Shown here: positions 43,801-45,244 of the stretch, one piece after another
Layout: the number at the start of each line of letters is the position of its first letter
Numbering within the stretch: position 1 is the first letter of the stretch
Sequence record: NC_048673.1
DNA: 64,000 bases
Direction: 5' to 3' (one strand)
The notes under the pieces: generated by a model
Databases searched by the model: none
What the model saw: only the letters and a program-made list of their open reading frames with translations
Told to the model about the DNA's origin: nothing
Made by a program: the position numbers and the translations under genes

Positions 43801-44344
43801 TTTAAAATCTTAACTATATTGATAACCGGCGTTAGCCTTTTTCATTTCGTAATCATCATCAACAAAAACATCGTGATTACCGTGCATGATATCATGTTTC
43901 AATTTACGATCTCGCTGACGACTCAATGTATTATAACGATCTTTGACACCCGATTCTGGATAACTAGGATATTTATCTCCCAGATCCCGATTCACTTTAA
44001 GTTCATCACCATACCAACTGTCCAGATGTTTTTCATTTTTACGACGAAATGTCTTACCCATATATCATTCCTTACAGGCTTTCTATGTATTTAATCACTC
44101 GGTTTAGTATTTCATCTGAATCATTTATCTCAATATCATCAAATGCATACTTTATCTTTTTTATTACAGTTTCTTTCTTCCATCCGATCTCGAAAGCATC
44201 ATTAACGAAAGAAACCCAATCAATAATATAACCGGAATTATAAAATTTCTCTATCAGAATATCCAACGGAATACCATTTGTTTCAAACTGATAAAATATA
44301 TTACATAAAACCGGAATACCACTATTGGTATAACCATTTACAAA

Positions 44345-44885
44345 AACACTATTTTTACCTTTACGTCCTAACGGCTTGCGTTTAGCGGTGACATATACAA
44401 CCTCTCTTTTTAAGTTTTAGCTTCATGTGCGGCTGCAAAGCAGGTCGAACCACCAAGGCACATACTTGTTGATGTGGTTCCGTAAATCGATCCGGTCGCA
44501 CCATCACCGGACTTAATAGCATTGGCTATCCGAGCCCAACATACAAACATCATCACCCCAATGGACTACGCCTGCAAAACGGTCTTGCTCGTTACTTTTA
44601 CGCTTAGGCCCTTATGGGAATCTAAGCCTTATATTTAACGTCATAACGGACGAGCTTATGTGATGGCTTGAATCAGTGGTCATTCACAAGCAATACTCCC
44701 TATGTAACCTTTTACCCGTCACGGACTAGAACCTTATTACAGGGAAGGAACCTACATCACCATTTGAGTAATGGGAGAGGTCGGGGTTCGGTTTTTATTT
44801 TCTAGCTTTCACTAGATTTTTTACAAATACCGGTGGGCTACTTAAAGCGTCGATTCTCATAGACCGGACTATTGACGAGAATCCA
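44345..44885 (-). ncRNA. GOLLD-like large structured RNA
   Basis: About 540 nt, ORF-free, directly 3' of tRNA-Thr; blocks GAACCCCGACCUCUCCC, GUGACGGGUAAAAGGUUACA, CGUAAAAGUAACGAGCAAGACC and GCGUAGUCCA match GOLLD as recalled; many helices. Boundaries approximate. Confidence 0.7.
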
Positions 44886-44890
44886 AAATT

Positions 44891-44966
44891 TGGTGCCGAA
44901 TGTCCGACTCGAACGGACCACCCCAGCGTTACAAAGGCTGTGCTCTACCAGATGAGCTAATTCGGC
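44891..44966 (-). tRNA. tRNA-Thr(UGU)
   Basis: Cloverleaf; loop TTTGTAA; encoded CCA. Confidence 0.95.
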
Positions 44967-45244
44967 AGCGGATTATAATCAGGATCGTTAGACTGTGATT
45001 ATATCCTAATGTAGTTGACATGCTATCACAAGGAGGAAGGACGTTCAACTGATTTTGTCCATCTGTTCGTTGTTTGGTAAAGGACAGTTACCTCAAGTTC
45101 AACCCTGCTTGTCAAGGAGTAGTTACCATATCGTCTTTATACTACCAATCCCGCCTGAAACCTAAAGGCACGTTTCAGGATATCCAGATTCTCTATGGCT
45201 GGCTTATTCCGGGGCATACGTCGTTACCCGTTCTTTGTGCTAAG

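Follow-up and report, generated by a model that had tools for sequence, protein, structure and literature searches.

What does a phage carry in a stretch of its transfer RNA (tRNA) cluster that encodes almost nothing? The question is raised by positions 44345 to 44885, on the minus strand, of a 64,000-nucleotide (nt) stretch of sequence record NC_048673.1, which in its entirety we call the window. The original prediction for this interval, made from its letters, was one structured noncoding RNA of about 540 nt, a minimized member of the GOLLD family of giant RNAs in a lytic T4-like phage. The phage was correctly recognized, the window being 100% identical to Aeromonas phage AS-zj, a 230-kb T4-like virus (Straboviridae, Ceceduovirus), and structured noncoding RNA is indeed embedded in the tRNA cluster, on the tRNA strand. 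The interval is, however, no single giant RNA but a series of folded RNA modules, each inherited separately. These modules, which we call X, Y, and Z, are real structured RNAs that come and go separately between phages. As to what they do, we infer from comparison of their sequences, with a probability of roughly 0.55, that they may be passenger RNAs of the tRNA operon, with X serving as punctuation shaped like a tRNA minihelix.

The interval lies within a tRNA cluster

ARAGORN finds ten tRNA genes within 3 kb, all on the same strand, and the interval lies inside this cluster on the minus strand. As had been claimed, it starts right after the CCA end, here encoded, of tRNA-Thr (anticodon UGU; 44891–44966, minus strand; 55.7 bits with the Rfam tRNA model), and it leads towards phrog_22967 and phrog_1774, a pair of small genes whose function is unknown. 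It is also richer in G+C than the window (0.442 vs. 0.385) and, as predicted, almost free of open reading frames (ORFs). The sole ORFs are of 46–48 amino acids (44382–44522 and 44410–44556) and are not conserved, both being split by a tRNA-Trp insertion in phages AP1 and CC2. Since no intrinsic terminator is predicted on the minus strand between 43800 and 48200, while a sigma-70-like promoter is predicted just before tRNA-Thr, it is plausible that the interval is read through together with this tRNA. The order of elements is tRNA-Thr, X1 (the first copy of X), a small hairpin, Y with an extension, Z, X4 (the second copy of X), and, last, a small gene's ribosome-binding site.

The interval is a chain of modules and not a GOLLD RNA

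GOLLD RNAs, a family first reported by Weinberg et al. (2009), are often longer than 800 nt, combine a universally conserved 3′ domain with a variable 5′ domain, sometimes carry tRNAs in their linker, and form a 14-mer RNA nanocage as seen by cryo-electron microscopy; members were collected with the Rfam model at E < 1e-5 (10.1101/2024.12.08.627333). ROOL RNAs average 581 nt and have six multistem junctions (PMC5737381). The idea that the interval is one large ornate RNA of either kind, 480–540 nt folding as a unit and perhaps multimeric, has several points in its favor. The AS-zj locus is, like GOLLD, a large noncoding region beside phage tRNA genes with unknown function, and its size range is similar to that of ROOL (~580 nt), with which it also shares the phage and tRNA neighborhood and the unknown function. 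The region is rich in helices, and in relatives of AS-zj a tRNA-Trp sits within the array, between Z and X4, which is reminiscent of the tRNAs in the GOLLD linker. A tRNA-island location, although a GOLLD trait that is present here and the habit of ROOL as well, is common to many other RNAs and insufficient alone.

Rfam 15 (4227 families, GOLLD and ROOL among them) was searched with cmsearch in four scans: the whole window at gathering score, a 4-kb portion at E ≤ 10, just the 566-nt stretch under the most permissive filters, and the version of the locus in CC2, chosen for being the largest (~1 kb), the most GOLLD-like in size, and endowed with an embedded tRNA. Neither GOLLD nor ROOL matched in any of these scans, down to E ≤ 10, and a T5-like copy likewise gave no match to either model. 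Only tRNAs and chance-level noise were returned, with RNase P RNA, tmRNA, SRP, 6S, ribozyme, and riboswitch families all at chance level. The literature checked names no usable accession for a GOLLD positive control in a phage record. The locus also differs from GOLLD in size (~480 nt of RNA modules, compared with >800 nt), in having no universally conserved 3′ domain, and in occurring in gammaproteobacterial T4- and T5-like phages rather than in Lactobacillales or lake sources.

Our analysis covered ~20 phages overall, the main alignment being made of AS-zj, AP1, CC2, 65, avDM6, Aswh_1, and ZPAH1, together with tRNA maps of their loci. The interval splits into four or five blocks that are present or absent independently of each other. 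Y and its extension (about 44629–44797) are deleted in phages 65 and avDM6, both of which keep X and Z, and in phage 65 X is in tandem duplicate. A tRNA-Trp directly follows the 3′ end of Z in AP1, CC2, Aswh_1, and ZPAH1, but not in AS-zj; in AP1 and CC2, this places it between Z and X4. Y and Z are separated by an insertion of ~85 nt in ZPAH1. In CC2, an insertion of ~130 nt (L005 1770–1910) consists of a second copy of the GGCUUAG hairpin of Z plus GCGUAAAAG, and the inner stem of the duplicated hairpin shows compensatory changes (CCC/GGG vs. AUCCC../..GGGAU). Finally, the T5-like contig L104 has an X of ~75 nt, a homolog of the interval's initial 75 nt, immediately 3′ of the Y core and ahead of the downstream hairpins. 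There it replaces four bases of the corresponding phage AhSzw-1 sequence, inside the Y transcription unit. L104 itself (JBOFFJ010000068.1, 4.9 kb) is binned as a Phocaeicola metagenome-assembled genome; its Y and X are nearly identical to those of Aeromonas T5-like phages, and it is probably phage DNA that was mis-binned into a Bacteroidota genome.

The pairing evidence agrees with this picture. The consensus fold of the whole X-Y-Z stretch, computed for the five phages having it, contains local helices and small junctions only, with none long-range. Four of the five helices named by the original prediction are real and covarying, and each finds its place in a module: X1 has GAUUCUC/GAGAAUC as its outer stem and CCGG/CCGG as its pseudoknot; CCGG/CCGG also forms the terminal hairpin of Z, whose first hairpin is GCUUAG/CUAAGC; and CUAGU-GAAA-GCUAG is the small hairpin between X1 and Y. 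The fifth, the long-range helix GCUCGU (44655–44650)/ACGAGC (44592–44587), is not conserved and is broken in most relatives: its first arm is GCGCGU in four of them and absent in phages 65 and avDM6, while the ACGAGC arm is invariant. RNAalifold instead pairs CGAGC with an invariant GCUCG (44535–44531) 55 nt downstream, within Z. The sequence blocks that had been quoted as GOLLD-like are present, with small spacing errors, and are simply the sequence of this locus, with no tie to GOLLD. Covariation can thus be found here, as anticipated, but it supports small local folds and not a GOLLD architecture.

Modular presence and absence, together with the lack of conserved long-range pairing, contradict a single giant RNA, and the last ~50 nt at the 3′ end fall outside the noncoding RNA altogether, being a ribosome-binding site, a mini-ORF, and probably coding sequence (see below). 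A compact GOLLD is not supported, and identity of the interval as GOLLD or ROOL is rejected; we likewise hold any large ornate RNA merely similar to them to be extremely improbable.

Module X is a covarying pseudoknot present in two copies

X1 (44816–44890, minus strand) and X4 (44412–44488, minus strand) score 83 and 73 bits, respectively, with our covariance model R2, and both are supported by a scan for a hairpin plus pseudoknot and by covariation. The motif measures ~75 nt. A U-rich lead ending in G precedes an outer stem of 6–7 bp, which is followed by an A-rich bulge of 4–6 nt on the 5′ side only and by an inner stem of 3–5 bp with an invariant G-C closing pair. The loop is 6–7 nt long in 10 of 11 copies (4–5 nt in that of Aswh_1). 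After the stem come GAC (AAC in phage 65), a 3–4-bp hairpin whose loop is usually UUAAGU, then CC (a single A in the X4b copies of phages 65 and avDM6), and finally 5–6 nt complementary to the loop. In X1, the outer stem (44883–44877/44858–44852) and the inner stem AUAG/CUAU carry the loop UCCGGU; GAC (44851–44849), the hairpin GCU-UUAAGU-AGC (44848–44837), and CC lead to the tail ACCGG (44834–44830), which pairs with the loop. X4 is built in the same way, with outer stem GAACCAC (44480–44474)/GUGGUUC (44453–44447), inner stem CAAG/CUUG, loop UAUGUGC, GAC, hairpin CUGC-UUU-GCAG, CC, and the pairing tail GCACAU (44430–44425).

In a ten-copy alignment, 97.5% of cells are paired, compared with 32–46% when the partners are slid. 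Both sides have changed in 17 of the 22 pairs, and covariation extends to five of the six pseudoknot positions, with loop/tail pairs as different as CCGGU/ACCGG, CGCCU/AGGCG, CGCAC/GUGCG, AUGUGC/GCACAU, and AUGGGA/UCCCGU. There are six different loop/tail complements in all, one of which was found blind. Model R2 was built without pseudoknot information, and outside its training set it matched phage Ahp1_CNU (35 bits, E about 1e-8), where the loop ACGAGC is perfectly complementary to a GCUCGU at the predicted place. When the 64 kb were scanned for a hairpin followed by UCGAC and by a loop complement, only X1 and X4 had the complement at a fixed offset of 16–17 nt; two more sites, with offsets of 13 and 37 nt, look like chance. 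The X string GACGCTTTAAKTRGCC occurs at 43 loci, all of them unrelated coding sequence or the known AS-zj and CC2 genomes, and the conserved string of X1-type copies was found only in the Aeromonas phages of this set. X matches no Rfam family. On this comparative evidence, X is an established RNA motif, absent from Rfam 15.

What X might do is suggested by its shape. RNase P cuts hairpin and pseudoknotted tRNA-like substrates that are not tRNAs, including pre-4.5S RNA, plant-virus tRNA-like pseudoknots, and the phage C4 and M3 RNAs (PMC11143913). The dimensions of X agree with those of an acceptor/T-arm minihelix (a coaxial stem of ~12 bp, 7 + 5, with a 7-nt loop and a single-stranded leader), and the leader resembles the inter-tRNA spacers of the same cluster. 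The junctions are alike too: the CCA of tRNA-Thr is followed by AAUUUU and then GGAUUCUC of X1, and two genes upstream the CCA of tRNA-Asn is followed by AAUUCU and then GGAUGUUC of tRNA-Tyr. X may therefore be viewed as a copy of the tRNA minihelix, in which a 7-bp outer stem and a 3–5-bp inner stem would carry a G-C-closed loop of 6–7 nt, the bulge of 4–6 nt would stand in place of the D and anticodon arms, and a pseudoknot of 5–6 bp with its own 3′ tail would lock the loop, much as the D-loop holds the T-loop. Sitting at module boundaries, X could offer a handle to the tRNA-processing machinery, with RNase P acting at its 5′ side. Alternatively, it could be a structural cap that gives the neighboring RNA a defined and protected end.

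The main rival for X is a new small self-cleaving ribozyme, which would cut near its own boundary and so release tRNAs and neighboring RNAs. Theta ribozymes, which are related to the ribozyme of hepatitis delta virus (HDV), sit beside phage tRNAs (PMC10879173), and X shares with them a small pseudoknotted fold within a few nt of a phage tRNA end as well as the order of elements: stem, inner stem-loop, stem, hairpin, C-containing linker, and final pairing strand. X1 begins 6–7 nt after a CCA, X is mobile and found at module boundaries, and this compact pseudoknot has invariant unpaired nucleotides (the G before the stem, the GAC after it, and the CC ahead of the pseudoknot strand). The catalytic C of HDV-like ribozymes immediately follows P4, and X has its CC at the corresponding place. 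The topology is nevertheless different. The tail of X pairs with the hairpin loop in 11 of 11 copies, while the final strand of HDV-like ribozymes pairs with the strand following P1, that is, between P1 and P3; the stems of X are coaxial, and X has neither the nested double pseudoknot (P1, P1.1, P2, P3, and P4) nor an Rfam HDV-type match. The bulge of 4–6 nt finds no complement in the tail, and the CC after the small hairpin is a resemblance only. Given, in addition, that no Rfam ribozyme family matches and that most conserved pseudoknots are not catalytic, we consider self-cleavage by X unlikely. Hammerhead, pistol, and HDV identities were also considered for X and Y by eye and discarded, the topologies being unfit and Rfam negative.

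Module Y is a junction RNA shared by T4-like and T5-like phages

Y (44695–44797, minus strand) is a multi-helix junction RNA of ~103 nt, supported by covariation and by being the sole match in the window to covariance model R1 (114 bits). It is closed by a 3-bp helix, P0 (ACC-N-N/N-N-GG), for which five pair types are seen, followed by a variable hairpin. The junction strands CCUCUC, UGAUGKAG, and UUACAUA are nearly invariant. The core (44708–44750) is highly conserved and reads CCUU...CCUGUAAUAAGG U UCYAGNCCGNGNCGRG UAA AAGG. In it, a 5-bp stem (CCUU/AAGG, CUUU/AAAG, CUCU/AGAG, and, in copy L202, ACU/AGU) encloses CCUGUAAYAAGG, and pair 11–17 of the bulged hairpin occurs in all four Watson-Crick forms. 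Eleven distinct copies from five lineages could be aligned without forcing; 97.7% of cells are paired, against at most 55% with partners slid, and 9 of the 20 pairs show compensatory change. Two other readings of Y were rejected. A loop-tail pseudoknot UGUAAY/GUUACA is invariant, sterically incompatible with the closing stem (zero-nt linker), and absent in L202, and a T-loop reading of GGUUCYAGNCC is contradicted by the covarying pairs 7–20 and 11–17.

Every Y-bearing locus scores 92–120 bits with R1, and phages 65 and avDM6 give no match. Y exists without X or Z in the T5-like Aeromonas phages AhSzw-1, Akh-2, and AhP_Mru1, lying between tRNA-Glu and tRNA-Ile where the flanks could be read. 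It is also present in Ahp1_CNU, in metagenomic phage contigs, and in the T4-like Citrobacter phage Ci1 and Cronobacter phages LPCS28 and S13, where it comes, again with neither X nor Z, just after the lysozyme gene and before tRNA-Met. Y loci are nearly always beside tRNAs. A relaxed pattern scan added a copy in a Cronobacter-like uncultivated virus genome, two short forms of 88 nt (one followed by tRNA-Tyr and tRNA-Ser), and one core-only copy, and these further members bring additional pair types. An 18-mer of the core, searched in metagenome and genome collections, hit 141 loci, of which only L104 is real. A partial copy of Y, comprising the 5′ half only (CCCUCUCCC-hairpin-GGUGAUG), lies ~260 nt upstream of the full Y in Aswh_1 (L008 1225–1249) and ZPAH1 (L009 1287–1311); R1 gives no match for it.

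The Y sequences of T4-like and T5-like Aeromonas phages are more than 80% identical. Because of this, and because the junction strands are near-invariant, Y may be trans-acting, with a conserved factor of the host or phage as its binding partner, and such a partner is the most likely explanation for this pattern of conservation. The same identity could instead reflect recent exchange under common host pressure, with the RNAs acting as counter-defense decoys that soak up tRNA-targeting nucleases or other RNA-sensing defenses and so complement the phage tRNAs. The minihelix shape of X would suit such a role, as would the strict association of the modules with tRNA clusters in phages of different families with shared hosts. 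Yet these arguments are purely contextual, Y is found in Citrobacter and Cronobacter phages and is not bound to Aeromonas, and we know of no defense system that targets such RNAs. We regard decoys as improbable.

Module Z and the lineage-specific elements

The small hairpin CUAGU-GAAA-GCUAG (44802–44815, minus strand), identified from its sequence, is followed by an A-rich linker; in every lineage, Y has a hairpin and AAAAA ahead of it. The extension of Y (44629–44694, minus strand) is lineage-specific and forms two putative hairpins (GCUUGUG...CACAUAAGC and CGUC-N6-GACG), its folding energy being slightly lower than that of shuffled sequence (z = −1.55). It holds the GCUCGU arm of the discarded long-range helix.

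Z (44489–44628, minus strand) is a structured RNA of ~140 nt, as seen with RNAalifold and from its minimum free energy (MFE; z = −2.32). Its four local helical elements are the hairpin GGCUUAG...CCUAAGC, a domain closed by CGAGC (44591–44587)/GCUCG (44535–44531), the hairpin GGAUAGC-CAAU-GCUAUU, and a terminal hairpin (44490–44512). Compensatory change is seen in six pairs. None of the seven Aeromonas T4-like lineages compared lacks Z, which could be a lineage-specific companion of the other modules.

These data bear on whether the modules are RNAs at all, rather than nonfunctional remnants (decayed tRNAs or recombination scars) or DNA cassettes such as promoters or recombination hot spots. 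The tRNA clusters of large phages are hyperplastic, the modules do shuffle here, and GCUUUA and UGCUUU inside X have what we take to be a resemblance to T4 MotA-box promoters. Compensatory changes, however, preserve the helices and the pseudoknot, invariant G-U pairs in Y and Z (several in the latter) make these structures strand-specific, Y is conserved across phage families, and neither ARAGORN nor the tRNA model finds tRNA remnants. There is hardly any likelihood left for remnants or DNA cassettes.

The 3′ end of the interval probably belongs to a small gene

Judging from sequence features and comparison, the 3′ end of the interval (about 44345–44406) is probably not noncoding RNA but a ribosome-binding site, a mini-ORF, and coding sequence. 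The segment 44368–44406 (minus strand) contains a Shine-Dalgarno sequence GAGAGG (44406–44401), a 6-nt spacer, an AUG (44394–44392), eight codons, and UAG (44370–44368), and it hardly differs between AS-zj and phage 65. It is followed by the gene for the small protein phrog_22967, of unknown function (44072–44347, minus strand). The annotated start is UUG 44266, which is the first canonical start in a frame that is open from 44416. From about 44347 on, within the interval of the original prediction, substitutions between AS-zj and phage 65 are mostly synonymous, which means that translation must start upstream of UUG 44266. The AUG at 44394 is in the −1 frame relative to the downstream ORF in AS-zj, whereas in phage 65 it is in the ORF frame across the UAG (a run of A5 vs. 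A6). This mismatch could reflect noncanonical initiation, recoding, or a sequencing difference. A programmed −1 frameshift or stop read-through from AUG 44394 was considered and set aside, no slippery site being seen and the A5/A6 difference making the frames inconsistent.

The vicinity of this gene makes it conceivable that the modules are cis-acting leaders of downstream small genes, with X4 as a protein-binding pseudoknot operator, of the type known from the 5′ end of T4 gene 32 mRNA, or with Y as an aptamer resembling a riboswitch. X4 lies ~20 nt upstream of the strong Shine-Dalgarno sequence and has an A/U-rich tract, CUAAAACUUAAAAAG, after it. A copy of X is always found ahead of the phrog_22967 gene in AS-zj, AP1, CC2, 65, and avDM6, and the near-invariant junction strands of Y are aptamer-like. 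By contrast, X1 and the X copies of L104 and Ahp1_CNU precede RNAs or a tRNA rather than a gene, Y of the T5-like phages sits between two tRNAs with no ORF to control, and Y of Ci1 and LPCS28 comes after the stop codon of a gene and ahead of tRNAs. A role as leaders is accordingly doubtful at best.

The modules may be passengers of the tRNA operon

Non-tRNA RNAs in phage tRNA operons are a kind that is already known; here, they are made of at least two motifs outside Rfam 15. X and Y are new relative to that release, large uncurated catalogs of phage RNA candidates (PMC10690425) lying outside the comparison. The closest RNAs in kind are T4 rnaC (species 1) and rnaD (species 2), ORF-free non-tRNA RNAs that the operon encodes on the same strand as its tRNAs and whose function has been unknown for decades. 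Like the interval, they directly abut a tRNA, the order in T4 being tRNA-Arg, rnaD, rnaC. By analogy, the AS-zj array would share the transcript of the tRNAs, from which processing would release a number of small stable RNAs. The AS-zj array is longer, though, and contains repeated mobile units, and there is no homology: at E ≤ 10, neither R1 nor R2 finds a match in the T4 region (L155), rnaC and rnaD included. A homology of Y to rnaD, suggested by UGAUGGUUCC..CUGAGUAAGG in the latter, was therefore dismissed.

Several points weigh against the proposal that the modules are tRNA-operon passengers punctuated by X. With no match of X or Y to rnaC or rnaD, the T4 analogy is one of kind only, and co-transcription, processing, and stability are all inferred from sequence. 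X immediately follows a tRNA in only some three of eight contexts. It has no 3′ RCCA, which aids bacterial RNase P, but GAC instead (AAC in phage 65); its pseudoknot uses the loop, not the acceptor end; and its outer stem is always preceded by G, where a U would be usual. In energy models of nested structure, neither X nor Y gains any stability over shuffled sequence (z = −0.6 to +0.2 for each alone, compared with −2.32 for Z and a mildly unusual MFE, z = −1.95, for the whole region), so that their support is comparative and not thermodynamic. As for the comparisons, X was aligned in a register set by hand with the structure as guide, and lineages are few (the effective sequence number of the Y model is 1.6), so that covariation counts overstate the number of independent events. 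Within Y, the helix CCU/AGG never varies and is hence unsupported, while UGUAAY/GUUACA, which is mutually exclusive with the covarying stem, is a possible alternative conformer.

A bolder version of the passenger proposal would make X a hitherto unrecognized mobile device of ~75 nt in large lytic phages, either a new class of self-cleaving ribozyme or a pseudoknot-locked, RNase P-recruiting minihelix, that acts as portable operon punctuation; with it, a phage could add new noncoding RNAs or genes to a tRNA operon and still obtain products with correct ends. Y would be a new trans-acting junction RNA, moved horizontally between Straboviridae and Demerecviridae because it targets a conserved host factor. 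We would call this combination speculative, with perhaps one chance in a handful of being right.

Other observations in the region and in related phages

A second ORF-free conserved stretch, of 278 nt, lies between tRNA-Pro and tRNA-Thr (44967–45244, minus strand). It is present in 20 records of Aeromonas T4-like phages, and its 64-nt core (query positions 110–173) is also found in the jumbo Escherichia phages vB_Ec-M-J and Turkey3. The stretch has no Rfam match, and comparison with ZPAH1 reveals compensatory changes (CCUGAAACG../..UUUCAGG vs. CCUGUAAUG../..UUACAGG). It, too, is probably a structured RNA of the tRNA operon, as yet without a name.

Three more observations concern other phages. 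In L012 (IMGVR_UViG_3300033069_000187, 1139–1409), a terminase-like frame, judged by eye from its letters, appears to be interrupted in its Walker A motif, with ~270 nt inserted between ..ILIYGGA and GSGKSRLL.., and the interruption looks like a group I-type intron. The tRNA cluster of AhSzw-1 contains an ARAGORN tRNA with anticodon CUA (L002 437–511; labeled Pyl), of the amber-suppressor type, and a second tRNA-like call with an odd 2-base anticodon. The deposited coding sequences for 64-amino-acid "hypothetical proteins" at L008 2285–2479 and L009 2068–2262 overlie tRNA-Ser and tRNA-Asp and are almost certainly spurious gene calls.

Implications for phage tRNA operons

The T4 rnaC/rnaD, GOLLD, and ROOL RNAs have been known for up to fifty years with no function assigned. 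Our findings correct an annotation trap, in that proximity to phage tRNAs and an abundance of helices are not sufficient for a GOLLD assignment. In phages of Aeromonas, Citrobacter, and Cronobacter, such "dark" stretches are put together from small, covarying motifs that can be exchanged, and one opaque region of 500 nt has given way to compact and testable objects, a 75-nt pseudoknot and a junction RNA of 40–100 nt. If X is a processing device, this would explain how tRNA operons tolerate the insertion of foreign RNA, and X might become a part for synthetic biology. If Y binds a host factor, it would represent a new phage–host RNA interaction.

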